Shown: positions 34,335 through 63,673 of the stretch, in pieces
How the letters are laid out: each line of letters begins with the position of its first letter
How positions within the stretch are numbered: the first letter of the stretch is position 1
IMG/VR virus record: IMGVR_UViG_3300031952_000001
Span: 62,001 to 126,000 of that record
DNA: 64,000 nt
Strand: one strand, 5' to 3'
Made by a program: the position numbers and the translations under genes
Notes under the pieces: generated by a model
Databases searched by the model: none
Seen by the model: the letters and a program-made list of their open reading frames with translations, nothing else
What the model was told of the DNA's origin: nothing

Positions 34335-34408
34335 CTTTAGAAATCCTCCGCCTCTCAGTGCTATACTCTGGCGGGTTATCAATCTAACAGAACGCAGCGG
34401 GACAGAAC

Positions 34409-40264: not shown

Positions 40265-40267
40265 CTA

Positions 40268-41104: not shown

Positions 41105-41136
41105 CCCAAATGATCTCAAACCGCTCATTTTCCCTC

Positions 41137-49962: not shown

Positions 49963-49990
49963 TTGACTCACTGAGTAGTATGGTTACATT
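49963..49990 (+). promoter_or_regulatory. early-type promoter
   Basis: TTGACT-N16-TACATT. Confidence 0.75.
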
Positions 49991-50021
49991 GGGGTTGTGG
50001 CCGAGTGCAAGGAGGTCTGCG

Positions 50022-50687: not shown

Positions 50688-50753
50688 CCTCTTGACTTCC
50701 TAACAAACAGTGGCTATATAGTTCAGCAGGGCTCGCACTATCAAGGAGAGGGC

Positions 50754-51530: not shown

Positions 51531-51533
51531 GAC

Positions 51534-52364
51534 ATGCTCAAGAAGATAGTACCCATCGAGCGTTCGCAGAAAGGCGGACTCCCCGGGGAGACTGTCGAGC
51601 GTCACCCGTCGTTCGGGCTGGTGGGGTTGTTCAAGACCTGCGGATCTCAGCCGCTCTTCGGGAGCCCGTTGGAGGTCAACAACGGCTACGTCACCATCAA
51701 GATCAGCCACGGGGAGAAGATCCACTCGGGGCACGGGTACGACCGGTACTTCCCCCGCAACACCGTCGTCGAGGTCATGATCAGCGAGGCCCAGTTCGCT
51801 CAGCTCATCACGAGCTGGAACTCGGGCGAGGGCGTTCCCTGCACGTTCGACTTCATCGCCCCTGGTGGCGAGGGAAGCGTGCCGGGCTGGCCGGACGACG
51901 ACTACGTCTCCGACACCGAGCAGGTCCGCAACGAGTTCAAGGACCGGATCTCCGACGTGAAGAAGAAGGTCGAGACCGCGATCACCTCGATGAACGCGAT
52001 CCTGGGGAAGAAGGGCGCGCTCACGATTGCGGAGAAGGATTCGATCCGAGAGGGCATGATCGCCCTCTCCCGGCTCCTCGACGACTCCGCCCCCTTCATG
52101 GCCGAGCAGTTCGTCGAGGTGACCGAGAAGGTCGTCCAGAAGGCCATGACCGAGATCGATGCCTTCGTCACCAAGGTCGCCGTCCACACGGGCCTGGAGA
52201 GCCTGAAGAAGATGGAGGTCTCGGGGCTGAAGCTCGCGGATGGTAGCACACCGAAGAGACTCTCGACGGGGGATCTGGAACTCGATGAGAACCTCATGTA
52301 CAGGCACGTCGACAAGGTCACGTCCGCCGATCCCGAGCAGGGCTGGGAGGACGACGATGCGTGA
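51534..52364 (+). CDS. hypothetical protein
   Basis: Long ORF with typical codon usage. Confidence 0.7.
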   Translation: MLKKIVPIERSQKGGLPGETVERHPSFGLVGLFKTCGSQPLFGSPLEVNNGYVTIKISHGEKIHSGHGYDRYFPRNTVVEVMISEAQFAQLITSWNSGEGVPCTFDFIAPGGEGSVPGWPDDDYVSDTEQVRNEFKDRISDVKKKVETAITSMNAILGKKGALTIAEKDSIREGMIALSRLLDDSAPFMAEQFVEVTEKVVQKAMTEIDAFVTKVAVHTGLESLKKMEVSGLKLADGSTPKRLSTGDLELDENLMYRHVDKVTSADPEQGWEDDDA

Positions 52365-52719
52365 CGAACGGAAGTGTAGCTGCGGCGGGATCGACATCGG
52401 GGTCGGTGTGATGCACGAGCCGATCTGCGAGCTGAATGACGCGGGGTGGATACACAAGCTGGAAGAGGACATCAGAGACCTAGAGGGTAGGGGTAGTTCC
52501 GGTCGAACCGTCTTCATCGTCTCTCGCCACAAGTGCACGACTCCGGACGGTGACCACCTCTTCGAGATCCAAGGTGTGTTCACCTCCGAGGAGAAGGCCA
52601 TCGCGGCTTGCCGTGACGAGAACTACGGCTACGGACCCGAGGTGCTCGACCAGGAGCTTCCGCACGAGAGCACTCCCTGGCCGGGCTACGTTTACCCGCA
52701 CGCGCCCAAGGTCGATTAG
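52357..52719 (+). CDS. hypothetical protein
   Basis: Overlaps the previous stop. Confidence 0.6.
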   Translation: MRDERKCSCGGIDIGVGVMHEPICELNDAGWIHKLEEDIRDLEGRGSSGRTVFIVSRHKCTTPDGDHLFEIQGVFTSEEKAIAACRDENYGYGPEVLDQELPHESTPWPGYVYPHAPKVD

Positions 52720-52722
52720 CAC

Positions 52723-52750
52723 TTGACAGCGCCTCCCAGGTGGTTACATT
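52723..52750 (+). promoter_or_regulatory. early-type promoter driving a non-coding transcript
   Basis: TTGACA-N16-TACATT. Confidence 0.75.
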
Positions 52751-52755
52751 TAACA

Positions 52756-52917
52756 CTGAACGGAGCGCAGAGACATCACGCTCCAACAGGACCAGGGCAC
52801 CTGTTCAGAATGCCCTAAGGGCTTCGGCCCTGTCACTGAGGAGGCCGGAATAGTCACCCGGCCACTACCCTCGGCCCCTGGCGGTGTTCTCCTTGTCGCC
52901 GCCGGGGGCCATTTTTA
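52756..52917 (+). ncRNA. unassigned ~160-nt structured RNA with a possible pseudoknot and its own terminator
   Basis: Five helices, a C(UUCG)G tetraloop, no ORF between promoter and terminator. Confidence 0.6.
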
Positions 52918-52918
52918 T
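52873..52918 (+). terminator. intrinsic terminator
   Basis: 12-bp stem GGCCCCTGGCGG/CCGCCGGGGGCC followed by ATTTTTAT. Confidence 0.7.
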
Positions 52919-52932
52919 GAATCCAAAGTCCG

Positions 52933-53430
52933 ATGTGGTATAAAAAGGCCATGCGCGGCATCCCCCCAGAAGGTTTCGTCCGTCTCGCCAGGTTCGTGGC
53001 GCAGCTCGACGAACAGCTCTCGATAGAGTGGACGTCGCCGGATCTCTCCGACGAGGTGGATGAGTACACAGAGAACCCTTGGAACCAGGTGTACATGAAA
53101 GGCAGGGGGATCGAGCTGGGGAGCGCCGACGAGGTGATCGAGTTCCTGAGCACCGGAGCCATGACCCCATTCTCCGCTGATCAGCTCCCCCAAGTCGAGA
53201 ACGTGACCTTGGGTGGGGAAGCCTTTGCCTCTGAGATAGAAGATCCTGGATACCGGGAGTCCTTCGACTCGATGGAGGAGGAGCTGTCGACGAAGGGGTC
53301 CATCACCCTCCCGGCTCCGATCCTGTTGAAGCTCGGGGGTGCCTACTACTGCTTTGCGGGAAACCGGCGGATCAACCTGGCCTTCAAGTATGATCTCCCC
53401 TTGGAGGTCTGGCTCGTTGAGGTTCCATGA
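52933..53430 (+). CDS. acidic protein, possibly ParB/Srx-like fold
   Basis: PAPILL..YYCFAGNRRINLA. Confidence 0.4.
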   Translation: MWYKKAMRGIPPEGFVRLARFVAQLDEQLSIEWTSPDLSDEVDEYTENPWNQVYMKGRGIELGSADEVIEFLSTGAMTPFSADQLPQVENVTLGGEAFASEIEDPGYRESFDSMEEELSTKGSITLPAPILLKLGGAYYCFAGNRRINLAFKYDLPLEVWLVEVP

Positions 53431-53612
53431 ACCGCGAGGATGATGATCCCACTCGTCCGATTACGTTAATCCCCAGACCCCGCTGCGCCAAGCCTCCAGA
53501 GTCCCCCTGCGCCTTCAAGGACGAGGAGGGGTTCTGCTCTAAAAGATATACCACTTGCCGATGGAAAGCTCTCTCGAACCCTCCATCTAGGTCGAAACGC
53601 GATCAATCCTGA
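53427..53612 (+). CDS. small Cys-rich hypothetical protein
   Basis: ATGA overlap; last + strand gene before the strand switch. Confidence 0.45.
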   Translation: MNREDDDPTRPITLIPRPRCAKPPESPCAFKDEEGFCSKRYTTCRWKALSNPPSRSKRDQS

Positions 53613-53697
53613 GCCCTCCAGGAGCCGTTCTAAGGCCCTGCCGGCGTTCAGGCTGTCCGAGTGCGGGTTTTTGGTCGAAAGGCTTAGAGGGGCTGCG

Positions 53698-53907
53698 TCA
53701 GGAGTTCCTGTGCCGGGTAGCGTTGTACTCCTCCCAAGCGGTCGAGAATTCTGAGTAGTTTTCCCAGACTGCGTAGAGGTGGCCGCACTTGGGGCAGAAC
53801 TTGTTCTGATCTTCGGGCTTGGTCCAGAAAGACGAGTGCGGACCCGGGTGATCTTCCCAATGGTATCCGCAACTTAGACAGCGGAGCTTGGCGAGCTTCT
53901 CCTTCAA
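53698..53907 (-). CDS. small zinc-ribbon protein
   Basis: CLSC ... CPKC; SD GGAGG before TTG. Confidence 0.65.
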   Translation of the reverse strand: MKEKLAKLRCLSCGYHWEDHPGPHSSFWTKPEDQNKFCPKCGHLYAVWENYSEFSTAWEEYNATRHRNS

Positions 53908-53916
53908 GGACCTCCC

Positions 53917-54228
53917 TCAGTGCCCGTAATTGAAGCCGTACCTGAACCTTCGAATCTTGTCACCGTCTTCGTGGTCTGTGAACGTGAACTCACGTCCAAA
54001 GCTGCCTCAACAGCCCTCGGCGGCGATCTCCTTGTAGGCCTCCATCTCTTTCTCGTTCCCCACCTCCGCGAGGCGAAAGTGGCTGGTGCACGCATAGCCC
54101 TCCCGGTGGACCTTGGCGATCCGGGCGGTTAAGAAGTCCGCGAGCTTTGGGTTCTTGTACCGCTTGAAGATCCACTCCCAGGTGGGACCGAGGTAGGAGT
54201 CCCGGTCGAAGCTCTCCTTGCGGCTCAT
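53917..54228 (-). CDS. candidate selenoprotein (UGA at 54009-54007 read as Sec; ...AEGC-U-GSF...GFNYGH)
   Basis: Reading through the TGA gives 29 more sense codons ending at the next gene's SD; a SECIS-like hairpin follows the UGA. Confidence 0.65.
53976..54001 (-). promoter_or_regulatory. bacterial SECIS-like hairpin
   Basis: mRNA UGA-GGCAGCUUU-GGACGUG-AGUU-CACGUUC: 7-bp stem, apical loop 16 nt after the UGA, G at loop position 2. Confidence 0.55.
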
Positions 54229-54231
54229 GGT

Positions 54232-54426
54232 TTAGACCTTCTCATCGCCGGGAACCGCCACGCCCGCCTTGATGATCTCCAGGCAACGTTCGTAGGTGCA
54301 CCTCTGGAGTCCGCAACAGAACGTGCACCAAGGGTTCCTCGAAACCTCCTTGGATCTGTAGCGGCAGGTCTTGGCCTCTTTCCGCCAGTCCAGGACAGCC
54401 TTGCCGTACTTTCGTTTCGGGATCAT
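54232..54426 (-). CDS. small Cys-rich protein
   Basis: Operon-coupled ORF. Confidence 0.55.
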   Translation of the reverse strand: MIPKRKYGKAVLDWRKEAKTCRYRSKEVSRNPWCTFCCGLQRCTYERCLEIIKAGVAVPGDEKV

Positions 54427-54429
54427 CGT

Positions 54430-55038
54430 TCACCTCACTTGGCCCCTGCCGGTACCGTTGCAGTCGGGGCAGGTCGTGTACCCCGGAGTCACGCAGCATT
54501 CGATCCCCGGGAGAGATGCTCCTTGCGCCCCGTAGGCCTGTCCGCTTCCCTTGCATCGAGGACAGCTCCGGTAGTAGACGTCGAGGTCCTCATCGCCCAG
54601 CTCTTCCCGTAGCCGCGCGTTTTCGGTTTCCAGGGAGGCCAGTGACTTCTCACCGAGCCGAGCTGCCGCCTGGAGCGCCTCGATTCGGGATTCCCGGAGA
54701 CGCATTCCCGCTATGGCAGAATTGAGTTCTCTTTGGGCGAGTTCCAGAGAGAGGCTGATCTCTGCCGTCATCGCACGCGCAGCGGCGAGGACGTGCTCCG
54801 CAGCCTCACCGATAGTCTCGTTGTCGTCCGCCGCCAGCGCAGACCGGGCTTCCTCGATCTGCGTTTTGCAAGCCATGAGGTCATCGAAGACGAGGTCCCG
54901 CTCCTCTTGGATCTGCTTGATCTCGGCCTTGTACTGGGCCTCGATCTCGTGGATCGCGATCCACACCCGACCTTGAGGGACGGTTGTGCCGTACAGAAGA
55001 TCCGTGATCCTGTTTCTGATCTCGTTGAGGTCCATCAT
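54430..55038 (-). CDS. coiled-coil protein with a C-terminal DnaJ-type zinc finger
   Basis: CPRCKGSG, CPDCNGTG. Confidence 0.7.
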   Translation of the reverse strand: MMDLNEIRNRITDLLYGTTVPQGRVWIAIHEIEAQYKAEIKQIQEERDLVFDDLMACKTQIEEARSALAADDNETIGEAAEHVLAAARAMTAEISLSLELAQRELNSAIAGMRLRESRIEALQAAARLGEKSLASLETENARLREELGDEDLDVYYRSCPRCKGSGQAYGAQGASLPGIECCVTPGYTTCPDCNGTGRGQVR

Positions 55039-55289
55039 CCCACCTTCTTTGCCTTGCCCCAGCAGTCGTCACACAGTTCGAAAAGCTCGTCGTCGCACCC
55101 GTAGCACCACCCGACCGTGCGCCCACAACCCGGGCACACGAACGTCCCGCCGCAGTCGTGGCCCCCGGGCCGGAACCTGCCCTTCTTGTCCCTCTCGGGC
55201 GGGACGAACGGGGTGAGCAGGTAGCGTCGATAGTAGCAGCCCGGCTGATGAATGGCTTGAGGCACTAGCCGTTTCCCTTCTCCATCAAT
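55035..55289 (-). CDS. small Cys-rich protein (start uncertain)
   Basis: CPGC..WCYGC..LCDDC; 3' part of track ORF 55035..55445. Confidence 0.45.
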   Translation of the reverse strand: MDGEGKRLVPQAIHQPGCYYRRYLLTPFVPPERDKKGRFRPGGHDCGGTFVCPGCGRTVGWCYGCDDELFELCDDCWGKAKKVG

Positions 55290-55572
55290 CCACCTCCTTC
55301 GGCACCGTGCGGAACGCCTCGCAGAAGTTCTCGTAATCGACCGTGTTGTCGCCCGTACCGCTCGGGAGCTGCCGCAGCCGGTTGATGGCGTCCTCGAACG
55401 TCGTGGTGTACGAGCACCACTCGTCGTAGAGGCGCACGACACCATCCTTCATGAGATCCTCGGTGCAGCAGACGCAGGTCGGCCCCATGTCACCGAACCC
55501 CATCCCCACCCTGTTGAGCTGCCGCGTTAGTTCGTCCCGGAGCTTCTCTCGCTGCGATCTGATTTCTCCCAC
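55285..55572 (-). CDS. hypothetical protein
   Basis: Operon-coupled ORF. Confidence 0.6.
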   Translation of the reverse strand: MGEIRSQREKLRDELTRQLNRVGMGFGDMGPTCVCCTEDLMKDGVVRLYDEWCSYTTTFEDAINRLRQLPSGTGDNTVDYENFCEAFRTVPKEVD

Positions 55573-55581
55573 AGTGCCCTC

Positions 55582-55767
55582 CTACAGATCCAGCAGCTCG
55601 TCGAGGGCTGCCTTCACGTCCGGGTGCTTCGGGCACTCGGGGTTGAAACAGGCCTTGCCGGTCGGCTCGTTCGGATCGAGCCCCTTCTCGGAGCACTCCT
55701 TGGCCGTGTAGGCATCCCGGATGTAGAGCGTCGTCAGCTTCCCTCCGCAGCGGTCACAGTTCTTCAT
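55582..55767 (-). CDS. small zinc-finger protein
   Basis: CDRC ... CFNPEC. Confidence 0.6.
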   Translation of the reverse strand: MKNCDRCGGKLTTLYIRDAYTAKECSEKGLDPNEPTGKACFNPECPKHPDVKAALDELLDL

Positions 55768-55770
55768 GGT

Positions 55771-55992
55771 CTACTCCTCGTCCTCGTGATTGTCGCCGTA
55801 GCGGTCCTCATCGTATTCATCGTCATCGGGACCCTCATCGTCATCGGGACCCTCATCGTCATCGGGACCCTCATCGTCATCGGGACCCTCATCGTCATCG
55901 GGACCCTCATCGTCATCGGGACCCTCATCGTCATCGGGGCCCTCATCGTCATCGGGGCCCTCATCGTCATCGGGACGTTTGTAGATGTCCAT
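55771..55992 (-). CDS. 73-aa hyper-acidic repeat protein (PDDDEG)x8-PDDDEY
   Basis: SD AGGAG; first gene after promoter 56040-56067. Confidence 0.7.
   Translation of the reverse strand: MDIYKRPDDDEGPDDDEGPDDDEGPDDDEGPDDDEGPDDDEGPDDDEGPDDDEGPDDDEYDEDRYGDNHEDEE
55813..55974. repeat. 18-bp tandem repeat (8 full copies plus 1 degenerate)
   Basis: Unit [AG]CCCTCATCGTCATCGGG, head to tail with no spacers. Confidence 0.97.
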
Positions 55993-56039
55993 GATCTTCT
56001 CCTTGTTCAGCGAGGGTCAGCTCGCTTCTCCTACTTGGG

Positions 56040-56067
56040 AATATAACTACTATAGTGAGGCTGTCAA
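56040..56067 (-). promoter_or_regulatory. early-type promoter
   Basis: TTGACA-N16-TATATT. Confidence 0.75.
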
Positions 56068-56070
56068 GAG

Positions 56071-56340
56071 CTAACCGCAGAAATCCTGCATGAACTTCGA
56101 GCGCCTCGAAGCGTAGGCTTGCGCTAGCTCGTACACGTAAGCATTTGCGTACTCGGGACCGTGCTTGTCTGTGAGGAGTTTTCTCAGTTGGTTCAGTGCC
56201 GTGGAGACGGAGTCACTCCCGGAGAACGACCGCGCCATGAGCATCATGAAGACCTTGAATTCCGGGGGCACATTGACCCCGGGAGACTTTACGACCGGCT
56301 CACTTGGTCTTGTGGAGTCGGTCAAGCAGGGCTTTTTCAT
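56071..56340 (-). CDS. hypothetical protein
   Basis: ORF ends just before a promoter. Confidence 0.5.
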   Translation of the reverse strand: MKKPCLTDSTRPSEPVVKSPGVNVPPEFKVFMMLMARSFSGSDSVSTALNQLRKLLTDKHGPEYANAYVYELAQAYASRRSKFMQDFCG

Positions 56341-56608
56341 CCTTCAGTTCCTCCGGTGTCGGGACGTGGCAAGTGCGCCTATACGTGTTCAAATTGCAGT
56401 TGCAACCCGCGCCGAATGCGAGATAGAATTTCATACGCTCTTTCACCTTCGTATCGGGCTCTTCGACGTACTTTCCGCACACCCACCGAGTGCCGTCCCA
56501 CAAGAGGTGCGGGCACCCGTGCCACGCTGCCCAATCTTCGAGCTGGTAGAAACTGCACGGACTTTTGCGGCAACAAAATCCGCAACCTATACACTCGTTC
56601 GATTTCAT
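56300..56608 (-). CDS. YkgJ-like cysteine-cluster protein
   Basis: CIGCGFCCRKSPC..CPHL..CGKY. Confidence 0.6.
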   Translation of the reverse strand: MKSNECIGCGFCCRKSPCSFYQLEDWAAWHGCPHLLWDGTRWVCGKYVEEPDTKVKERMKFYLAFGAGCNCNLNTYRRTCHVPTPEELKDEKALLDRLHKTK

Positions 56609-56844
56609 TCTTGCACTTCGACTTCATACTCTTCTATGATGTGGGCGTTGATAAGAACCCATGCCGTACTTCTGATATCCGACGAACCCCGGCGGAGGTA
56701 ATATTCTCTAACCCAACGGAATGCCGGAGCCCATTGTCCGTCTATGAGTGCGAGCTGGCAGTCGTCGGGGAGCCCGAGCTTCTCTGCTCTTTCTAAGAGG
56801 TCGTCTCCTTGGACGATACGGTGCATCTTGACTTTCAAAGTCAC
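56605..56844 (-). CDS. hypothetical protein
   Basis: Overlap-coupled ORF. Confidence 0.55.
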   Translation of the reverse strand: MTLKVKMHRIVQGDDLLERAEKLGLPDDCQLALIDGQWAPAFRWVREYYLRRGSSDIRSTAWVLINAHIIEEYEVEVQE

Positions 56845-56999
56845 TTTGCTCTCGTCGGCTGGAGGTTGAGGACGTCACCCAATTTCGGCAACCAGGATCG
56901 TACCCTCTTCTCGACCGGCTCTACCGGCTCGATCTCCTCGACCAGCTCTTCGAGCGCCAGCTTGTCACTCTTCGCACGTCGTTTCTTCTCGGTGTCCAC
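56841..56999 (-). CDS. 52-aa hypothetical protein (not in the ORF track)
   Basis: SD AGGAGG, GTG start, MDTEKKRRAK...; follows promoter 57017-57044. Confidence 0.55.
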   Translation of the reverse strand: MDTEKKRRAKSDKLALEELVEEIEPVEPVEKRVRSWLPKLGDVLNLQPTRAK

Positions 57000-57016
57000 G
57001 CTGTCCTCCTACCTGG

Positions 57017-57044
57017 AATGTAACCACTCGGGAGAGGCTGTCAA
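57017..57044 (-). promoter_or_regulatory. early-type promoter
   Basis: TTGACA-N16-TACATT. Confidence 0.8.
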
Positions 57045-57050
57045 GGGCTA

Positions 57051-57272
57051 CTACCAGGAAAGAATACCCACCTTGCGCGTGCCCTCTCCGTCACTCACGT
57101 CGTCCATTGGGAATCCGTCATTTACCCAGCCTTTATCGGACTCCCTACGAAGGCTCTGTACCTCACAGGAATGCTTCCCTGCATGACCGGCTTTCCGTGT
57201 GCAATAGAACTCCACGAGGGCATCGGGGCCTATCGATGCATTCTTTACGAATTGGTCGCGGCACAGTTTCAT
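57051..57272 (-). CDS. hypothetical protein
   Basis: Operon-coupled ORF. Confidence 0.5.
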   Translation of the reverse strand: MKLCRDQFVKNASIGPDALVEFYCTRKAGHAGKHSCEVQSLRRESDKGWVNDGFPMDDVSDGEGTRKVGILSW

Positions 57273-57514
57273 TTCAGCCCCCTATCTGCCCCGACGAACA
57301 GACCCATTGCTGCCGCCATGACCAGCCGCGCGTTGGCTCGCTTCTTGTCCTTCTCGTGCCACACCTTCCGCTGGGATTCCTTCTCCTCTTCGGTCAGGCC
57401 CTCCCACCACTTGCGCGCGTCTTCTCTCTTGGCCTCCTCGGCGGCGGCCTTGCGCGCGATGCTCTGAGCTGCACGCTCCTCTCGGGTTGCCGCTCGACGT
57501 CGCGCCTCGCCCAT
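57269..57514 (-). CDS. basic hypothetical protein
   Basis: MGEARRR start; operon-coupled. Confidence 0.6.
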   Translation of the reverse strand: MGEARRRAATREERAAQSIARKAAAEEAKREDARKWWEGLTEEEKESQRKVWHEKDKKRANARLVMAAAMGLFVGADRGLK

Positions 57515-57518
57515 CGGT

Positions 57519-57794
57519 CTACCTCACCGCGTTGCCGGTCTTCGTGAACCGGACCTTCTCCAGAGCCACGAGCACGTCTCCCAGCTCCCGCCGGGCCATC
57601 TCCATGACGCGGATCGCCTCGGCTACCTGCGCCTCGTCGGTCGCGCCCTCGTCGAACGTGTCCTTGACCTCCCGGGCGATGAAGAGTGCCAGCGTGTCCC
57701 CCAGGCTGCCCTCGTCGCCTTCCTCGAAGGACGCCTTCACCAGCCCGTCCGGGTATCCCTCGTCCACGATCTCGATCAGCTTGTTCAGGTCCAT
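57519..57794 (-). CDS. acidic hypothetical protein
   Basis: SD AGGAG; follows a promoter. Confidence 0.7.
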   Translation of the reverse strand: MDLNKLIEIVDEGYPDGLVKASFEEGDEGSLGDTLALFIAREVKDTFDEGATDEAQVAEAIRVMEMARRELGDVLVALEKVRFTKTGNAVR

Positions 57795-57843
57795 GTTCGT
57801 CTCCTTGTTCAGTGCGAGTAGTCACCCCGCATTTCCTTCTACC

Positions 57844-57871
57844 AATGTAACCATGCCTGTCGGGGAGTCAA
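57844..57871 (-). promoter_or_regulatory. early-type promoter with a leader hairpin (loop GTGACTA)
   Basis: TTGACT-N16-TACATT; hairpin at 57814-57830. Confidence 0.8.
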
Positions 57872-57889
57872 GGGCCGGGTCGGTCGATT

Positions 57890-58642
57890 CTACTGTCCCT
57901 CGTAGGAGTACATCTCGGCCTCGGAAGCGAGGTTCGAACGGAACTCCTCGCGCTTCTCGTCGATGGCCTCGACGACCTTCTCCTCGAACTCCTCGGGAGT
58001 GAGCCCCTGCTCGACGTAGCTCTCGGTCAGCTCGGTGTACCACCAAGCCTCGTCGGCTACGGGGTCGGGGCACTGGAGATCTTTCTTGTCCCTCTCGGCG
58101 TTCTCCTTGGCCTCCGCGCGCAGTCGGGTCATGACCTCTTCGGTCAGCTCCTTCAGGTGCACGTCGTCGATGTCGAGTGTCTCCAGGGCCTCCTCCCGCC
58201 AGGTGTCCTCGTCGAAGTCCCTGTCGGTGCCGTCCAGGCTGTCCGCGCATTCCCGGCACCCGTCCGCCCGCTCCTGGAGCATCTCGCCCGTGCTGCCCTG
58301 CTGGAGCCCTTCGGGCATGTTGTTCAGCTTCTCCTCGCAGTCGTCCGCGAGCGAGTTGTACTCTTCCACGAGGTTCTCGATCTCGCTCACCAGCTCGTCC
58401 AGATCCGTGATGTTCGTCAGCTCGGACACCCGGTCGTTCAGATCGTAGACCTGCGACAGGAACTCCGAGTTCGTCTTGTCCGACGCCTTGAAGTCGCAAT
58501 CCCCATGGGTGCAACGGATCTTCCGACCACCGAACTTGATCTTGAGCCACCGGTAGGGATCGCCCTTTCTGATTTCGACCCCGCACTTCCCGCAGGTGCC
58601 CTGGTCCTTCTGAGCCTTCGCGACGTGGTTGATCTTCGGCAT
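57890..58642 (-). CDS. zinc-finger plus acidic coiled-coil protein
   Basis: CGKC..CTHGDC; very acidic C-terminal half. Confidence 0.75.
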   Translation of the reverse strand: MPKINHVAKAQKDQGTCGKCGVEIRKGDPYRWLKIKFGGRKIRCTHGDCDFKASDKTNSEFLSQVYDLNDRVSELTNITDLDELVSEIENLVEEYNSLADDCEEKLNNMPEGLQQGSTGEMLQERADGCRECADSLDGTDRDFDEDTWREEALETLDIDDVHLKELTEEVMTRLRAEAKENAERDKKDLQCPDPVADEAWWYTELTESYVEQGLTPEEFEEKVVEAIDEKREEFRSNLASEAEMYSYEGQ

Positions 58643-58643
58643 C

Positions 58644-58856
58644 TCAATCCTCCTCCGGCTCTCCCGCTACCGGCAACCCGAACAAGAATCCCGGACCGTT
58701 GCCTTCCTCATCGCGCGACACCTCGATGACGAACTCCTCACCCTCCTTGGTTCGCACGGTGAACCGGGGGAACTCCGCACCCCCGTCCACATCCACAATC
58801 GTCGCCCCTTCGAGCTGGGCATAGTACCTCTTGTAGAACTCGCTCCTGCGGTGCAT
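58644..58856 (-). CDS. hypothetical protein
   Basis: SD GGAGG; follows a promoter. Confidence 0.65.
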   Translation of the reverse strand: MHRRSEFYKRYYAQLEGATIVDVDGGAEFPRFTVRTKEGEEFVIEVSRDEEGNGPGFLFGLPVAGEPEED

Positions 58857-58890
58857 CTCAGTCCTCCAGGTTCTCTTCTTGCCTACCCCT

Positions 58891-58918
58891 AATGTAACCA
58901 TCCCTAGCAGGGAGTCAA
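58891..58918 (-). promoter_or_regulatory. early-type promoter
   Basis: TTGACT-N16-TACATT. Confidence 0.8.
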
Positions 58919-58922
58919 GGGG

Positions 58923-59159
58923 CTATTTGTACTTCGTGGTGAGGGCGCGGAGCGCCTCCTGCCCACACAGGGAGATCCGGCTCGCCCACATGCCGACCAG
59001 GCTCTCGGCGGCGCTCGCCGCGTGCTGTAGGTAGGTCGCCTCGTCGTATGCCTCTATGTACCGATCCTCTTCGGTCGTCGCCGCGAGCGCCCTGTCGTGT
59101 GCGAGACGCGCCCGCTCCCGGTACATCTCATACGTCTCCTCGTGCGTCGTGACGGGCAT
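58923..59159 (-). CDS. hypothetical protein
   Basis: SD GGAGG before MPVTT. Confidence 0.55.
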   Translation of the reverse strand: MPVTTHEETYEMYRERARLAHDRALAATTEEDRYIEAYDEATYLQHAASAAESLVGMWASRISLCGQEALRALTTKYK

Positions 59160-59160
59160 C

Positions 59161-59373
59161 TCAGTCCTCCTCGCCGCTCTCGACGATGTCTTCGATGCGG
59201 AAGGTGGCGGTCCACTCCTTGCCGCAGTCGTGGCACTCGACGGTGACCTTCTTGACGTCGTCCTCGTCGGCACTGTCCTCGACCGTGTGCTCCCAGGTGT
59301 TGTACTTCCCGCAGTACGGGCACTTCGATCCGCCGCTCGCCAGGCACTCGTCTTTGAAGTTCATCTTCAACAT
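59161..59373 (-). CDS. small zinc-ribbon protein
   Basis: CPYC ... CHDC. Confidence 0.65.
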   Translation of the reverse strand: MLKMNFKDECLASGGSKCPYCGKYNTWEHTVEDSADEDDVKKVTVECHDCGKEWTATFRIEDIVESGEED

Positions 59374-59392
59374 GTTCGTTTCTCCTGCTTGG

Positions 59393-59420
59393 AATGTAAC
59401 CACTAGGGAGAGACTGTCAA
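59393..59420 (-). promoter_or_regulatory. early-type promoter
   Basis: TTGACA-N16-TACATT. Confidence 0.8.
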
Positions 59421-59605
59421 GAGGTGTGGTTCTTAATCTCTTCTACCGCCCACAACCTGTCGAGGAGGTCATCCTCGTACTGTGGATCTTCATGGATCTC
59501 GGATTCGCCCTTCTCGGCTTTGTATCGGGCTTTGTTTGCGTCTTCGGCTTCGACGAGGACACGCTGCCGCCAGATCTCCTTTTTCGTCACTATGAAGAGT
59601 GGCAC
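59417..59605 (-). CDS. hypothetical protein
   Basis: GTG start; 3' part of track ORF 59417..60175. Confidence 0.5.
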   Translation of the reverse strand: MPLFIVTKKEIWRQRVLVEAEDANKARYKAEKGESEIHEDPQYEDDLLDRLWAVEEIKNHTS

Positions 59606-59823
59606 TAGACGCCCGTCTCCAGGTGCTCTTCCTGGTTCGGATCGTCCTCTTCGAGGGCGAACTGCGCATCCTTCAAGAGATCGAGGGCGGCCTTGAGTGC
59701 CTCGTCGGCGCACTGGGTAGAGTTGTCCTCGACCTTGAGCCCGTCCCGGACCTCGTCGAGCTTCTGAGACAGCCTCCAGATCTTGTCCGCGAGCATCTGC
59801 CTGTCGGTCATCGGCTTGCCCAT
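59605..59823 (-). CDS. acidic hypothetical protein
   Basis: Operon-coupled ORF. Confidence 0.6.
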   Translation of the reverse strand: MGKPMTDRQMLADKIWRLSQKLDEVRDGLKVEDNSTQCADEALKAALDLLKDAQFALEEDDPNQEEHLETGV

Positions 59824-59832
59824 GACGCCCTC

Positions 59833-60384
59833 CTACCTCTCCGTGAAGACGACCTTCGAAGTCTTCTTCTGCTTGGCCTTGTTCGGGGTCGTGAGGACGA
59901 ACTCCTTGCCTCTCCTCTTGAATGTCATCCCGTCCTCGAAGGGCATCTCGGTGCGGAGCATCCCGGTCTTGCCCGTGCCCTTGGGGTCGTCTCCCGCCGT
60001 CCACATGGACGTGAGGGTGAACTTCTGGTCGTGCAGGGTGTCGCCCATCTGCCTCGGGATGCCGTAGACGCCGCGCACGGATGAATCCCTCTTGTACGTG
60101 AACCGCACGGCGAACCCCGTTCGCAGGTGGAAGAGCACCGCGTTGATCCTGTCGGCGGTCGTCTTCGTGATCCACCCGCCGGAATTCACCACGACCGACA
60201 TGACCGCGTAACCCGCCTTGTTCAGGTACAGCTTCACGACGTCCGTCGTGTGGTACCGGACCGCGATCATGAGCCCCTCGTTCTCCAGGCCGAGAACCTC
60301 GACCTTCGTCACCTTGGGGTAGCCCCCCAGAGCCCGCCGGATCTCCTTCTTCAGCTCGTTCGCGACCTTCATTCTCGCGTCCAT
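59833..60384 (-). CDS. hypothetical protein
   Basis: SD GGGAGG; VRYHTTDVV..NSGGWITKTTADRIN. Confidence 0.7.
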   Translation of the reverse strand: MDARMKVANELKKEIRRALGGYPKVTKVEVLGLENEGLMIAVRYHTTDVVKLYLNKAGYAVMSVVVNSGGWITKTTADRINAVLFHLRTGFAVRFTYKRDSSVRGVYGIPRQMGDTLHDQKFTLTSMWTAGDDPKGTGKTGMLRTEMPFEDGMTFKRRGKEFVLTTPNKAKQKKTSKVVFTER

Positions 60385-60418
60385 GATGTCCCTCCCGTTG
60401 TTCTTCTCGCCTATCCCC

Positions 60419-60446
60419 AATGTAACCATCGGGGAGCGGCTGTCAA
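60419..60446 (-). promoter_or_regulatory. early-type promoter (copy 1 of a duplicated cassette)
   Basis: TTGACA-N16-TACATT, identical to 60729-60756. Confidence 0.8.
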
Positions 60447-60449
60447 GTG

Positions 60450-60695
60450 CTACTCGTCGAGATCGTTCCCCTCGTCATCGAGACTGAGGAACTCGGGGTC
60501 GGAACCCTGCGCGATAAGCTCTTTCACCATTTCCGGCCCGGTGAGGCATTCCTCTTTCTCTCGCCGAACCACCCCGGAAGCCTCACCTTCGGAGATCTCG
60601 TGCGCGATACTGCTCAGGTTGCTCCTGGTGAAAGGGCCTTCGGTCAACACCTCGACCATGTAGGTCGTTTTGTAGAACTTGCGGTCGCTCGCCAT
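60450..60695 (-). CDS. acidic protein, paralogue of 62278..62532
   Basis: RKFYK..IAHEISEG..SGVV..KELIAQGSDPEF. Confidence 0.75.
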   Translation of the reverse strand: MASDRKFYKTTYMVEVLTEGPFTRSNLSSIAHEISEGEASGVVRREKEECLTGPEMVKELIAQGSDPEFLSLDDEGNDLDE

Positions 60696-60728
60696 GTTGT
60701 CCTCCCGTTGTTCTCTTTGCCTACCCCC

Positions 60729-60756
60729 AATGTAACCATCGGGGAGCGGCTGTCAA
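60729..60756 (-). promoter_or_regulatory. early-type promoter (copy 2 of the duplicated cassette)
   Basis: TTGACA-N16-TACATT. Confidence 0.8.
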
Positions 60757-60759
60757 GTG

Positions 60760-61251
60760 CTAGGCGGCGCGTTTCCTCGACAGCTCCATCCCGTACAGCT
60801 CAAGCCACGACGTGAGGCACTCCAGGCTGGTCGTGGACGCGGCGCATTCCCGCGCGATGGTCTTACAGGTGTCGTCGTCCAGGTTCTTCCCGGAGTCGTC
60901 TAGGAGCTTCCCCAAGGGGTCCGGGTCGTTCATGTCCACGATCCAGTAGTGACCGTCGAGCGTGTCTTTGCACGCCGCTAGATCGTCATGAAGGTTCGAA
61001 CCGGTGATCTGCTCGATTCCGTCCCGGAGCGTACCGCGCTCGTGGGTGCCCGGATTGGACCCTTCCCACAGGTCGTTGATCTGATCGTACAGCTCGGCCC
61101 ACCGGGCGTCGAACGCCTGTCGCTGCTCGGCCTCGGCCTGGCGCTTCTCACGCTCGGCCTTGCGGCGCTCGTCGGCGATCCGCCGCTCCTCGTCGCGGCG
61201 AAGCTCCTCGGCCCGGTCCAGCTCGATCTGGGCTTTCGTTCGGCGTGCCAT
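60760..61251 (-). CDS. hypothetical protein
   Basis: Operon-coupled ORF. Confidence 0.65.
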   Translation of the reverse strand: MARRTKAQIELDRAEELRRDEERRIADERRKAEREKRQAEAEQRQAFDARWAELYDQINDLWEGSNPGTHERGTLRDGIEQITGSNLHDDLAACKDTLDGHYWIVDMNDPDPLGKLLDDSGKNLDDDTCKTIARECAASTTSLECLTSWLELYGMELSRKRAA

Positions 61252-61252
61252 G

Positions 61253-61705
61253 CTAGGCCCCCTTCTCGACCGGCTTTCCGACCAGACAATCCCATGTCTC
61301 GGAGTTGCAGACGAGGTACTCGATGTGCTCCTCCATGACCTCTTCGTAAAGCCTCTGCGCCTCTTCGGGGTCGTCTGCCTTGGGGCGCGGCTCGACCGTG
61401 TAGGGGTGCCCCTTGATCCTGCCGTCGAAGTATTCGACGCGCGGCTCCTCGCGGTTCGCTTCCCGGAGGTACTCGTCCACCGCTTCCAGCTCTTCGTCGG
61501 TCAGGTCGCGCGTCGTGGTGAACGTGTGGCCGATGTAGTAGCACTCCTTGTTCGCTTGGAACGAGCAAATATGCACGTCCAGGTTCGCGTCGAAGAGGTG
61601 CGCCGAGAAGATCCGGTCCACACCGTCCGGGATGCCGTTGTAGAACTCCGTCTCATCGTCGATGAAGATCCGCAGATCCATCGGGATTTTCGTCTTCTCG
61701 TCCAT
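61253..61705 (-). CDS. acidic hypothetical protein
   Basis: SD AGGAG; follows a promoter. Confidence 0.7.
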   Translation of the reverse strand: MDEKTKIPMDLRIFIDDETEFYNGIPDGVDRIFSAHLFDANLDVHICSFQANKECYYIGHTFTTTRDLTDEELEAVDEYLREANREEPRVEYFDGRIKGHPYTVEPRPKADDPEEAQRLYEEVMEEHIEYLVCNSETWDCLVGKPVEKGA

Positions 61706-61752
61706 CGGGTTCTCCTTGTCGTTGCCGGCGGGTAGTCATCCCGCCTATCCCC

Positions 61753-61780
61753 AATGTAACCACCCCTAGCGGGCTGTCAA
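61753..61780 (-). promoter_or_regulatory. early-type promoter with a leader hairpin (loop ATGACTA)
   Basis: TTGACA-N16-TACATT; hairpin at 61728-61744. Confidence 0.8.
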
Positions 61781-61796
61781 GGGGTTGCGCGGTCTT

Positions 61797-62051
61797 TTAG
61801 TCCCCGTACAGGTGATTGAGCCGCTTGACGGCTGACTTCGACAGGCGACCGTTCCGCGCCGCGAAAGACCTCTCGTCGGGCCACAGATCGTCTGCGTAGA
61901 TGTCGAAATCGGAATCCCAACACGCGCGAATGAGCTTGATCGTCTCCTCGACCGAGAGATCGTCGAACACCTCCTCGTTCGTGGAATTCGCCACCTCGAC
62001 GAGCCGACGAAGGAACTCGATCCCGGTTTCTTCCTGTTTCTTCTCGGTCAT
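61797..62051 (-). CDS. hypothetical protein
   Basis: SD GGAGGG. Confidence 0.65.
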   Translation of the reverse strand: MTEKKQEETGIEFLRRLVEVANSTNEEVFDDLSVEETIKLIRACWDSDFDIYADDLWPDERSFAARNGRLSKSAVKRLNHLYGD

Positions 62052-62060
62052 GTTGCCCTC

Positions 62061-62276
62061 CTAGTCGCCCTCGTCGGGGAGCGGAATGCCGCCGATCTCG
62101 AAGTAGGACACGGCGAGCACCTTCCCGTTCCCGTTGTCGAACTCGGTGCACATCTTGGGGTTGTAGCCCTCGGGTGCGACGATGATCAGGTTCAGCCCAC
62201 CTTCGTCGACTCCGATCACGTCGTCCCCGTCCCACCCGGACAAGTACATTCGAAGCTCTTTCACCGTGCACGCCAT
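62061..62276 (-). CDS. hypothetical protein
   Basis: SD GGAGG. Confidence 0.6.
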   Translation of the reverse strand: MACTVKELRMYLSGWDGDDVIGVDEGGLNLIIVAPEGYNPKMCTEFDNGNGKVLAVSYFEIGGIPLPDEGD

Positions 62277-62277
62277 C

Positions 62278-62532
62278 TCAGACCTCCTCGGTATCTTCGC
62301 CGTTCTCGGTTATCTGGAAGAACTCGGGATCGGACCCCTGCGCGACCAGCTCTTTCGCCATTTTAGAGGCGGTCAGGATCTTTTCCCCTTCGTCGATGAC
62401 GACCCCTGAACAGTGGCCCTCGCTCATCTCGTAAGCGATGGTTTCCAGGCTCAGATCGTCTCGAAGCGGCTCCTCACTCAGAAGCTCGATCTTGTAGGTC
62501 CGCTTGTAGAACTTGCGTTTGCTCTTCGCCAT
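62278..62532 (-). CDS. acidic protein, paralogue of 60450..60695
   Basis: RKFYK..IAYEMSEG..SGVV..KELVAQGSDPEF. Confidence 0.75.
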   Translation of the reverse strand: MAKSKRKFYKRTYKIELLSEEPLRDDLSLETIAYEMSEGHCSGVVIDEGEKILTASKMAKELVAQGSDPEFFQITENGEDTEEV

Positions 62533-62541
62533 GTCGTCCTC

Positions 62542-62760
62542 CTAGTCGTCCTCGTCGTCGAGGGGGGAGAGCTGACCGACGATCTCTGCGATCCAACGCA
62601 GACCCCCATTATCCGCGAGATATTCGAATTGCCCCTCGGGGCCGCTGTTGTTGATCGTCGCAGCCTCTTCGTTTTTGAGATCGCGCACGTACTCGTCGAG
62701 CGCGCCCTCGGATAGTTTCAGAGCCCGCTGTCGCAGAGCTTCTTTTCTGTCGTTGTTCAT
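62542..62760 (-). CDS. hypothetical protein
   Basis: SD AGGAG; follows a promoter. Confidence 0.65.
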   Translation of the reverse strand: MNNDRKEALRQRALKLSEGALDEYVRDLKNEEAATINNSGPEGQFEYLADNGGLRWIAEIVGQLSPLDDEDD

Positions 62761-62805
62761 CGTCTTCTCCTTGTTGTGAGTCGGGTAGTCATCCCGCCTT
62801 GCCCC

Positions 62806-62866
62806 AATGTAACACAGGCAAATCGGCGGTCAAGGGGCTTGACTCTCTTTTCCCGGTGGTTACATT
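62806..62866. promoter_or_regulatory. back-to-back divergent promoter pair
   Basis: Minus strand TTGACC-N16-TACATT (62833-62806); plus strand TTGACT-N16-TACATT (62839-62866). Confidence 0.8.
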
Positions 62867-62905
62867 TCCCGCTAGGCAGGGCAACGACCAAACGAGGAGG
62901 ACGAC

Positions 62906-63349
62906 ATGGCGGTCAACTGGACAGCGAAACCGGTTCTCACGGACGAGATGGACGAGGGTTTCCGTGTGGTAACGGTGGACGGGGTCAAGCTCAAGTGGTC
63001 GGGCACGCTAGACGTCCCGGATCTAGGAGAGCAAATCCACGTCACGTTCAACGGGTTCGGTCGTGGGTTCGTGCGCGGCTACTGCTACATGGACGGGTTC
63101 GCCGCGCTGCTCGTCGAGCCGGAGAAGTTGCCCGATTGGTACGTCAAGCAGTCAAAGACAACGCACTACAAGCCGGAAATGCCCATGAAGATCATCACCG
63201 TCTTCGGAATCGAATTCAAGACCGTAGATGATCCCTTCCGGTGCCGGTACGACGACTGCTCGAAGGGATACCCGGTCGCCACGGACGACGAACACGTAAC
63301 TTGCCCCGCGTGTCGGAAGGATATGGGCCTGCCTCCCTTGACAGCCTGA
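62906..63349 (+). CDS. hypothetical protein with a C-terminal zinc ribbon
   Basis: SD GAGGAGG; CRYDDC..CPAC. Confidence 0.7.
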   Translation: MAVNWTAKPVLTDEMDEGFRVVTVDGVKLKWSGTLDVPDLGEQIHVTFNGFGRGFVRGYCYMDGFAALLVEPEKLPDWYVKQSKTTHYKPEMPMKIITVFGIEFKTVDDPFRCRYDDCSKGYPVATDDEHVTCPACRKDMGLPPLTA

Positions 63350-63365
63350 AACCGGTGGTTACATT
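63338..63365 (+). promoter_or_regulatory. early-type promoter
   Basis: TTGACA-N16-TACATT. Confidence 0.8.
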
Positions 63366-63399
63366 GGGTAGCAGGGACAGCGAACAACGGGAGGGCAAC

Positions 63400-63639
63400 A
63401 TGGCAACACAGGTCATCGTGAAGAAAAAGAAGTTGTCGGACGGTTCCGAGGTGTTCAACGTTGTGCTCGTGTTCCCCCTTGGTGGTCGTGTGACGTGCCA
63501 CATGGACAGCGAGAAGTCGGCGGAAGATCTGGAATTCCAGTTCAACCGGATTTTCGATCCTGAGAAGACCGGGATACCCACCTTCGGGAAGGCGAACGGG
63601 ATCATCGAAATTTGGGTCGACGGCGACGACTTCAAGTAG
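63400..63639 (+). CDS. hypothetical protein
   Basis: SD GGGAGGG. Confidence 0.65.
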   Translation: MATQVIVKKKKLSDGSEVFNVVLVFPLGGRVTCHMDSEKSAEDLEFQFNRIFDPEKTGIPTFGKANGIIEIWVDGDDFK

Positions 63640-63645
63640 AAGCCC

Positions 63646-63673
63646 TTGACAGCCTGAAACCGGTAGTTACATT
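63646..63673 (+). promoter_or_regulatory. early-type promoter
   Basis: TTGACA-N16-TACATT; spacer nearly identical to that of 63338. Confidence 0.8.

Follow-up and report, generated by a model that had tools for sequence, protein, structure and literature searches.

The locus at 52723-52916 (+) of an uncultured 212-kb phage raises the question of whether a phage-encoded RNA of about 160 nt base-pairs with the leaders of several of the phage's own early operons. The window analysed here is a stretch of 64,000 nucleotides, positions 62,001 to 126,000 of the IMG/VR record IMGVR_UViG_3300031952_000001. The first-pass annotation, made from the sequence alone, had noticed three minus-strand early leaders with a hairpin loop RUGACUA between promoter and SD, and a complementary loop in an ncRNA, with up to 9 nt of complementarity to the 57.8-kb leader. 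It inferred a kissing-loop regulon and considered TAGTCAYCCNG as a protein-binding site to be the alternative. We find that this observation is correct, with all four elements present where they had been placed. The interpretation is supported in part. Its central idea, one small RNA pairing with several early leaders, has much stronger sequence support than was given for it, however, the kissing contact is probably the minor one, the stronger half of the match was missed, and the set of leaders has at least five members, not three.

The ncRNA unit possesses its own transcription signals. The promoter at 52723-52750 (+) consists of TTGACA, a 16-nt spacer and TACATT, is preceded by GGT, and belongs to the same class as the 21 early promoters of the genome. 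The RNA itself spans 52757-52916 (+), where the 5' end is inferred from the -10 box and the 3' end from the U-tract. It folds into four stem-loops plus a terminator (z = -4.5), and no ORF of 40 aa or more lies on this strand. The sequence AAUAGUCAC (52849-52857) forms the loop of hairpin 3 at 52843-52863, closed by the 6-bp stem GGCCGG/CCGGCC, with an unpaired probability of about 1. The intrinsic terminator at 52873-52916 has a 14-bp stem, a U-tract and a 10-nt loop UUCUCCUUGU (52887-52896), which is an anti-SD sequence, also with an unpaired probability of about 1. The opening energies of the two loops are 0.01 and 0.38 kcal/mol.

By nhmmer the RNA is found in one copy in each of the two complete genomes, that of this phage (G000) and that of a relative (G001). 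It is 159/160 identical between them, while both flanks, including the flanking genes, and the promoter sequence are unrelated. A promoter is kept in G001 and in the related loci L028, L030 and L040, although the flanking sequence differs. Six homologues from related uncultured phages keep the fold with 8 compensatory pairs, and the stem of hairpin 3 covaries. UAGUCA in loop 3 and UCCUUGUC in the terminator loop stay invariant in all six. There is no cultured relative, and a scan of 52700-52960 against Rfam at E <= 10 returned only two weak unrelated hits.

The three leaders on the minus strand share one design, in which each hairpin lies 6-14 nt after the -10 box of a TTGAC-N17-TACATT promoter and 8-13 nt before the SD. 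The 57.8-kb leader (57792-57871) has its promoter at 57844-57871, the hairpin GCGGG/CUCGC with one G.U pair at 57814-57830 (within the hairpin feature 57813-57831), the loop GUGACUA at 57819-57825, ACAAGGAGA at 57800-57808 and the ATG of a 91-aa ORF at 57792-57794. This module is conserved before the same gene in the 7 related loci that hold its homologue (G001, L028, L029, L030, L031, L035 and L036). The 61.7-kb leader (61703-61780) has its promoter at 61753-61780, the 6-bp stem GGCGGG/CCCGCC at 61727-61745, the loop AUGACUA at 61733-61739, a 13-nt complement of the ncRNA, CGACAAGGAGAAC, at 61709-61721 and the ATG of a 150-aa ORF at 61703-61705. The 62.8-kb leader (62758-62833) has its promoter at 62806-62833, only a 4-bp stem CGGG/CCCG at 62782-62796, the loop AUGACUA at 62786-62792, ACAAGGAGAA at 62765-62774 and the ATG of a 72-aa ORF at 62758-62760. 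A fourth leader of the same design, overlooked before, lies at 55990-56067 (-), with the promoter at 56040-56067, a hairpin at 56009-56026 with the loop CUGACC, ACAAGGAGAA at 55997-56006 and the ATG of a 73-aa ORF at 55990-55992. A fifth is located at genome position 129.5 kb.

Is the loop-loop match more than chance? RTGACTA alone is not enriched, with 7 occurrences in the window against 6 expected. A genome-wide count of RTGACTA hairpins had been set beforehand as a check: of 14 copies in the 212-kb genome only 3 form the loop of a hairpin with a stem of 4 bp or more, and all three are these leaders. A 9-nt loop holds the exact 6-mer complement with probability 0.0006-0.003. The loop-loop match is 4-9 nt long in the five G000 leaders, at -3.8 to -8.3 kcal/mol, and the opening energy of the leader loops is 2.4 kcal/mol or less. 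The 9-nt complementarity GGGUGACUA with the 57.8-kb leader exists, however, it runs into both stems and is not conserved, because the G001 orthologue has the loop CUGACUA with the same ncRNA, and the 7th to 9th base pairs are lost there. The conserved core is 6 nt (UGACUA:UAGUCA), is short and AU-rich, and falls to 4-5 nt in some conserved leaders (CUGACC, CCGACUA, GUGACUC). The kissing loops are co-conserved but do not covary, because the ncRNA core never changes.

The motif TAGTCAYCCNG occurs 4 times in the window against 0.17 expected, with all four copies reading the same way on the + strand and lying just downstream of promoters. This could point to a double-stranded DNA site, or an inverted repeat, bound by a phage repressor or another DNA-binding protein, as in operators or the asymmetric stoperators of Cluster A mycobacteriophages. 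We consider this very unlikely, and the protein-binding DNA motif is not supported. In relatives only 5-6 bases are kept, and only TAGTCA or GAC is conserved rather than 13 bp or more as DNA, and the YCCNG part changes in step with the opposite stem arm, which is the signature of an RNA stem and not of a protein-DNA contact. In the leaders the motif always has the same orientation relative to transcription, while the ncRNA copy has the opposite one. The second complementarity, at the SD, has no DNA-site explanation.

This second complementarity is the stronger one. The terminator loop UUCUCCUUGU is a perfect complement of the extended Shine-Dalgarno ACAAGGAGA(A) that follows every one of these hairpins. 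The match extends over 10 nt in the 56.0-kb leader, 9, 13 and 10 nt in the 57.8-, 61.7- and 62.8-kb leaders, and 12 nt in the leader at 129.5 kb, with duplex energies of -13.8 to -22.6 kcal/mol and an opening energy of the SDs of 1.5 kcal/mol or less. In 5000 dinucleotide shuffles of the ncRNA none reaches 13 nt and three reach 12 nt. Of eight ACAAGGAG sites that precede a start codon in G000, five carry the upstream hairpin, and of seven non-self ACAAGGAGAA sites, four are these leaders, while hairpin-less early leaders use GGGAGG or GAGGAGG SDs. We note that any strong SD pairs with a CUCCUU loop, and that duplex energies with hairpin-less leaders (-6 to -17.6 kcal/mol) overlap those of the tagged leaders. 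The tagged leaders are also paralogous cassettes, so five targets are not five independent observations. The two sites lie in the opposite order on the sRNA and the mRNA, so they cannot form one continuous duplex, and a 10-nt loop cannot pair along its whole length without strain.

The matches are kept in diverged relatives. The leaders of L028, L030, L031, L035 and L036 keep the NUGAC(UA) hairpin plus ACAAGGAG, with stem covariation (GCGGG/CCCGC, GCGAG/CUCGC, GACGAG/CUCGUC, GGGCGG/CCGCCC). The terminator loop matches over 8-14 nt across the SD in G000, G001, L028 and L030, and each phage's own ncRNA matches its own leaders at least as well as a foreign one does. The L030 ncRNA matches its own leader over 14 nt, against 10-11 nt for foreign ncRNAs, and the G000/G001 leaders match their own ncRNA over 9-13 nt, against 8-9 nt with the L030 ncRNA. 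In L038 the loop reads AUCCUUGUC, which costs one pair with GGAG.

The leader hairpin might instead be a stand-alone RNA element, either a 5'-proximal stabiliser against 5'-end-dependent RNases or the binding site of a phage RNA-binding protein, such as a boxB/nut-like antiterminator or a translational regulator. In this case its complementarity to loop 3 would be coincidence and the ncRNA would act, if at all, only through its anti-SD loop. We regard this as the least improbable of the alternatives, although still unlikely. The hairpins begin within about 0-8 nt of the expected transcription start, the position of known 5' stabilisers, and only GAC is strictly invariant in the leader loops, which suits a protein contact as well as a kiss. 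The lack of covariation with the ncRNA loop and the occurrence of some GACUA hairpins in G001 together with a different SD, AGGGAGG, point the same way. However, the one other invariant apical loop of the same ncRNA is the exact complement of the commonest leader loop core (p about 0.001-0.01), the match is kept in diverged phages, and the hairpin is tightly linked to the SD variant that matches the ncRNA. No candidate RNA-binding protein was identified, since the early proteins have no Pfam or PHROG hits.

The ncRNA also carries an invariant 5' block CACUGAACGGAG at 52754-52765 (+), which has the same sense as the linker plus SD of the 57.8-kb leader. This points to descent from a leader, and the complementarity may be a relic of a gene that arose from rearranged, inverted pieces of an early leader and now serves as a structural, decoy or host-directed RNA without regulating the leaders. 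An anti-SD loop would also pair with many host mRNAs. We find this reading doubtful. A relic should decay, whereas here the two complementary loop cores are the invariant unpaired segments while stems and other loops change, and the leaders keep the matching bases ACA upstream of the SD core in every relative.

Hence, we suggest, as somewhat more likely than not, that the unit encodes a free-standing, trans-acting antisense small RNA of the phage with two contact sites. A subset of early operons carries a two-part tag in the 5' leader, a promoter-proximal hairpin with the loop NUGAC(UA) followed 8-14 nt later by the extended ribosome-binding site ACAAGGAG(A), and the sRNA presents the complements of both parts in two open loops. 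We propose that the hairpin-3 loop kisses the leader loop, giving fast and specific docking, and that the terminator loop then pairs with the SD and the three bases upstream of it. This would block 30S binding and shut off translation of the first gene of each tagged operon, perhaps with later mRNA decay. Being driven by the same strong promoter type as its targets, the sRNA would accumulate during early infection and act as a delayed brake. The transcription signals, the conserved fold, the accessibility of both loops and both target sites, the complementarity, its conservation in relatives and its statistical excess are shown here, by computation only, while it is inferred that the RNA is made, that it binds and regulates the leaders, that the effect is repression and that it has a role in timing.

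The same pairing might also have the opposite sign, when the ncRNA protects or activates the tagged mRNAs, for example by shielding them from a phage or host endoribonuclease that cuts at GGAG-type SDs, as T4 RegB does, or couples them to a later release. Production from the same promoter class and at the same time as its targets would be unusual for a pure repressor, and the pairing evidence is the same. We consider activation very unlikely, as the SD and the 5-8-nt spacer before the ATG are free in the leaders, so there is nothing to unmask, and pairing over the SD blocks 30S binding in all characterised cases (PMC2837412, PMC2946933).

A wider, and at present doubtful, possibility is that phages of high-GC hosts use a general address-tag system. 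A subset of non-structural operons would carry an extended SD motif, here with a 5' hairpin, and a single phage RNA displaying the antisense of that tag in a hairpin loop would switch the whole set off, or on, post-transcriptionally. If so, the same logic could explain the start-associated sequences (SAS) of Cluster K mycobacteriophages, whose role has been unknown since 2011. Their only reverse-strand SAS copy, a possible partner, sits in the apical loop of a conserved, covarying hairpin in the gene 92-93 gap, where late transcription is reported to start.

Among known systems, the sequence features of the unit fit those of a trans-encoded sRNA that occludes the RBS: its own promoter and terminator, conserved single-stranded seeds, and complementarity to the translation-initiation regions of its predicted targets that is kept in relatives. 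Two-site complexes that mask the SD are known. The c4 antisense RNA of phages P1 and P7, acting on the icd/ant leader from the immunity region, is likewise a phage small RNA that controls phage genes, presents complementary sequences in loops, pairs at two sites including the ribosome-binding site and blocks translation (PMC12197685). c4 is processed out of the same transcript it regulates and serves lysogenic immunity with a single target operon. The RNA here has its own promoter and terminator, lies on the opposite strand from its four in-window targets and 3-10 kb away, and has at least five predicted target operons. The phage shows no tyrosine integrase, and there is no sequence or structure homology to the c4 family in the Rfam scan.

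Staphylococcus aureus RNAIII binds coa (and rot) mRNA in a bipartite complex, where one contact masks the SD and suffices for repression, the second is a loop-loop kiss, and Hfq is not needed (PMC2837412). RNAIII is, however, a bacterial quorum-sensing regulator with C-rich loops, and its kiss lies downstream in the coding region, whereas here it would involve a 5'-proximal hairpin upstream of the SD, with the anti-SD in the terminator loop. In the OxyS-fhlA complex of E. coli two sRNA stem-loops contact two mRNA sites, one sequestering the RBS and the other increasing efficiency (PMC2946933). OxyS is a host sRNA assisted by Hfq, its second site is in the coding sequence, and it has one such target rather than a family of tagged leaders.

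Compared with the kissing antisense systems of the CopA/CopT, RNA I/RNA II and Sok/hok type, complementary apical loops of 6-7 nt are present on both partners in most leaders (UGACUA with UAGUCA, both open), with a weaker match of 4-5 nt in the CUGACC and CCGACUA leaders. The recognition loops of such systems carry a YUNR U-turn motif. The ncRNA loop starts with CUAG in L028, L030, L038 and L040 but with AUAG in G000 and G001, and the leaders read CUGA in most orthologues but AUGA or GUGA in G000. The partners here are not cis-encoded and fully complementary, as they lie at separate loci with complementarity limited to two short blocks. The lambda N/boxB (nut) hairpins also lie in the 5' part of early transcripts and have a conserved loop. 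boxB is read by an arginine-rich peptide, has a GNRA-like pentaloop and is paired with boxA. Here there is a complementary RNA and a loop of 5-9 nt, no boxA-like repeat is evident next to the hairpin, and no N-like protein was identified among the early proteins, which have no family hits, although an N-like peptide cannot be excluded.

Finally, the start-associated sequences (SAS/ESAS) of Cluster K mycobacteriophages also extend beyond the SD and sit a few bases before the start codon of a subset of non-structural genes, often with an upstream inverted repeat, and their function is still unknown (PMC3203893, PMC11373665). They occur in 13-19 copies, ESAS is now read as a promoter with an operator-like repeat, and no RNA partner has been proposed. 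The 13-bp SAS motif is GGGATAGGAGCCC whereas the motif here is ACAAGGAG(A), so that the design is analogous but the sequence is not shared.

The DNA analysed here belongs to a 211,982-bp IMG/VR virus record (G000) and covers its bases 62001-126000, with 60% G+C. At the DNA level no cultured phage is similar to it, and conserved proteins reach only about 25% identity: megablast against cultured phages gave no match, blastn gave only a 200-bp, 68% match to Cluster D mycobacteriophages, and tblastn with the SbcC-like protein found only relatives at about 25% identity. The phage encodes a tmRNA with the tag peptide ADADVIPFPKMAVPSLQREAA, a tRNA-Met and a tRNA-Pro (window positions 39345-39713, 40193-40265 and 41030-41108). 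It also encodes a 779-aa RecA (1456-3795, plus strand) with the core domain at residues 39-212, the C-terminal domain at 719-771 and about 500 residues inserted between them in an intein-like manner.

The genome has 21 almost identical strong promoters of the form TTGAC-N14-(G)GTTACATT. Nineteen of them cluster at 111.9-129.2 kb of the genome, which is 49.9-67.2 kb in window coordinates, and those of the window itself lie at 49963-63673, including a back-to-back divergent pair at 62806-62833 (minus) and 62839-62866 (plus). They drive divergent arrays of small ORFs without known families, and this stretch is the early region of the phage. The leaders behind these promoters fall into two related cassette types, one with a hairpin and ACAAGGAG and the other with GAACAACGGGAGG.

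The observation made in the first-pass annotation is correct as it was written. Three minus-strand leaders have a hairpin whose 7-nt loop is GUGACUA or AUGACUA, located 6-14 nt after the -10 box and 8-13 nt before the SD, with stems of 5-6, 6 and 4 bp. On the plus strand a promoter of the same class (52723-52750) is followed by about 160 nt without an ORF and by a 14-bp terminator with a U-tract. The ends of this putative transcript are inferred from the consensus signals. The RNA folds far better than its shuffled versions (z = -4.5) and shows AAUAGUCAC as the loop of a 6-bp hairpin with the unpaired probability of about 1. As a bare word RTGACTA is not enriched; however, only three of its 14 copies in the genome form the loop of a hairpin with a stem of 4 bp or more, and they are exactly these leaders. 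The longer word TAGTCAYCCNG occurs 4 times against 0.17 expected. A scan for any hairpin with GAC in the loop was far too unspecific, and only its promoter-proximal hits were used.

The alignment of the ncRNA homologues revealed a second invariant unpaired block, CUCCUUGUC, which had been missed in the first-pass annotation. It is located in the 10-nt loop of the terminator hairpin (UUCUCCUUGU, 52887-52896) and is the exact complement of the extended SD that follows each hairpin. The match comprises 13 nt in the 61.7-kb leader (CGACAAGGAGAAC), 10 nt in the 62.8-kb leader (ACAAGGAGAA) and 9 nt in the 57.8-kb leader (ACAAGGAGA). The search of the genome for ACAAGGAG found two more leaders of the same build, one in the window at 56.0 kb (hairpin loop CUGACC, 10-nt SD match) and the other at genome position 129.5 kb (loop CCGACUA, 12-nt match). 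Of eight ACAAGGAG sites that precede a start codon in the genome, five have the hairpin, and of seven non-self ACAAGGAGAA sites, four are these leaders. Early leaders without the hairpin use other SDs, such as GGGAGG or GAGGAGG.

In 5000 dinucleotide-preserving shuffles of the ncRNA the longest complement to the five leaders never reached 13 nt and reached 12 nt three times, although it should be kept in mind that the target leaders are paralogues. The chance that a 9-nt loop holds the exact 6-mer complement of the leader loop core is 0.0006-0.003. The two matches lie in different loops and against different leader elements, and together they are far beyond coincidence. Both ncRNA loops cost almost nothing to open (0.01 and 0.38 kcal/mol), and the leader loops and the SDs are also open (2.4 and 1.5 kcal/mol at most). 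Duplex energies are -13.8 to -22.6 kcal/mol for the SD contact and -3.8 to -8.3 kcal/mol for the loop-loop contact.

An exact-pattern scan identified a second complete phage, G001 (205,564 bp), the ncRNA of which is 159/160 identical, although the promoter sequence and both flanks are unrelated. The DNA on both sides of the ncRNA (51528-52722 and 52916-53583) has no counterpart in G001, and a search for related loci with the two genes flanking the ncRNA found nothing, since the flanks are not conserved. The RNA is therefore a conserved island among variable accessory genes. The downstream ORF (52933-53430) seems to have its own TGGTATAAA-type -10 box very close to its start. A promoter-pattern scan of viral sequences returned only G001 and one chance hit (L027), and the terminator pattern found only G001 in viral contigs and nothing in prokaryote genomes. 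A metagenome scan returned the window's own contig (L032) and two hits at 38% GC from gut metagenomes (L033 and L034), which, inspected only at the match, were taken to be due to chance.

Further diverged relatives were obtained by protein searches with early genes followed by contig look-ups (contigs L028, L029, L030, L031, L035, L036, L038 and L040). One of them, L036 (Ga0315294_10283944), occurs in the same metagenome as the phage studied here; its 91-aa gene is 64% identical and its leader loop is CCGACUA, so related phages co-occur. Six ncRNA homologues, a small set of about four distinct types, align with 8 compensatory pairs. Hairpin 3 changes its stem (GGCCGG/CCGGCC, GGUCGGU/ACCGACC, GUCCGGU/ACCGGAC) and its flanking loop bases, but UAGUCA never changes, and the terminator loop keeps UCCUUGUC in all six. 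All five homologues with an intact 5' end keep a promoter. nhmmer finds one copy per genome, and no Rfam family matches. We also considered a pseudoknot between loop 3 (UAGU) and the downstream ACUA, but rejected it because ACUAC is not conserved in L030 or L038. The invariant 5' block of the ncRNA, CACUGAACGGAG (52754-52765), has no complementary site in the genome. It has the same sense as the linker plus SD of the 57.8-kb leader, which hints that the sRNA gene descends from a leader.

The leaders of these phages keep the module. Their stems covary (GCGGG/CCCGC, GCGGG/CUCGC, GCGAG/CUCGC, GACGAG/CUCGUC, GGGCGG/CCGCCC), the loops read A/G/C-UGACUA in most, with the variants CCGACUA, GUGACU(C), UGACU and CUGACC, and the SD is ACAAGGAG throughout. 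The stems were read directly, as the MAFFT alignment of the leaders places gaps inside the loops of the short-loop variants and was thus not used for pair counting. Stem covariation around a conserved asymmetric loop is the signature of an RNA hairpin, not of a protein-bound DNA palindrome. The YCCNG part of the motif TAGTCAYCCNG, proposed in the first-pass annotation as an alternative protein-binding site, is simply the stem and is not kept in the relatives. In addition, two leaders of G001 at 78.09 and 78.39 kb (18094-18130 and 18392-18428 of its segment L015) keep a GACUA-loop hairpin but have the SD ACAGGGAGG, which would pair with the ncRNA loop only through two G.U pairs. They may be weaker or escaped targets.

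The kissing core shows co-conservation only. The ncRNA 6-mer is invariant, and the extra pairs that give 7-9 nt in G000 are absent in G001, whose orthologous leader has CUGACUA with the same ncRNA. At the SD contact there is a modest lineage-specific fit. The L030 ncRNA matches its own leader over 14 nt (GCGAGGACAAGGAG), whereas foreign ncRNAs match that leader over 10-11 nt; the G000/G001 leaders match their own ncRNA over 9-13 nt, but the L030 ncRNA over only 8-9 nt. This is suggestive and not a formal test.

Hence, we suggest that the RNA is most likely a trans-acting antisense sRNA with two contacts. In this view, the terminator loop pairs with the SD and the ACA upstream of it and so blocks ribosome binding, while the hairpin-3 loop kisses the 5' hairpin of the leader. 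The earlier interpretation, a kissing-loop regulon in which one sRNA controls several early operons, is supported in part. A CUCCUU loop can pair with any strong SD, and the duplex energies with untagged leaders overlap those of the tagged ones, so that energy alone does not separate the two groups. The kiss is therefore a plausible source of specificity and speed. We consider the SD pairing more likely than not, whereas the kiss remains tentative, with the chances slightly against it. The two contacts lie in opposite order on the two RNAs, so they must form as two separate helices, as in the RNAIII-coa and OxyS-fhlA complexes (PMC2837412, PMC2946933). Repression is the expected sign, because the SDs are predicted to be free in the unbound leaders. 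The sRNA shares the early promoter type, so the simplest role is a delayed shut-off of a subset of early genes. All the evidence is computational: the transcription signals, the fold, the open loops, the complementarity and its conservation are read from sequence, whereas the expression of the RNA, its binding to the leaders, the repression and the role in timing are inferred.

An immunity role like that of P1 c4 is less likely, because no tyrosine integrase is present. The only recombinase-domain hit sits next to a TnpB gene: at 31785-35593 (plus strand) a TnpB-like gene (OrfB_IS605 plus the Cas12f-like TNB domain, 34409-35593) lies near an ORF with a serine-recombinase ‘Recombinase’ domain (about 32535). 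This may be an IS607-type element inside the phage.

A possible parallel was found in Cluster K mycobacteriophages. In Adephagia (JF704105, 58590-58740; locus L042:8590-8740, also loci L043-L047) the only reverse-strand copy of the start-associated sequence (SAS) lies in the unannotated gap between genes 92 and 93, where late transcription is reported to start (PMC11373665). On the transcribed strand it forms the 10-nt apical loop CCUCCUAUCC of a long hairpin (z = -6.5), which complements the SAS core over 10 nt. The element is present in 131 Cluster K phages, and five diverged copies show 6 compensatory pairs, with the loop unchanged in four of them. However, DarthP has a changed loop although its 15 SAS are unchanged, so there is no covariation. 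The hairpin may be an anti-SAS RNA element. This lead is unproven, but it suggests that the anti-tag-loop design may be more general and gives a testable idea for a motif whose role has been open since 2011.

Most known phage-encoded sRNAs target host genes, or act as cis-antisense or immunity RNAs on one phage operon (review PMC12197685). A free-standing phage sRNA governing a regulon of five or more of its own early operons, recognised through a modular leader tag of hairpin loop plus extended SD, would be different. It would be an RNA-level counterpart of the protein translational repressors of early genes, such as T4 RegA, and a clean, Hfq-independent model for how a short kiss gives specificity to an otherwise promiscuous anti-SD loop. 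The system is also small and accessible in vitro with synthetic RNAs, although the phage is uncultured. The mechanism itself is known, the RNA family is new, and the architecture, a free-standing phage sRNA with a regulon of its own early operons marked by a modular leader tag, is new for a phage as far as the review and our searches show.

The closest phage precedent is the c4 RNA of P1/P7, in which loops complementary to the target leader, including its RBS, also block translation (PMC12197685). c4 is not homologous to the RNA described here. It is also processed from its own target transcript and has a single known target. The closest mechanistic precedents are RNAIII-coa/rot and OxyS-fhlA. 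The leader tag resembles the SAS/ESAS motifs of Cluster K mycobacteriophages in design but not in sequence (PMC3203893).
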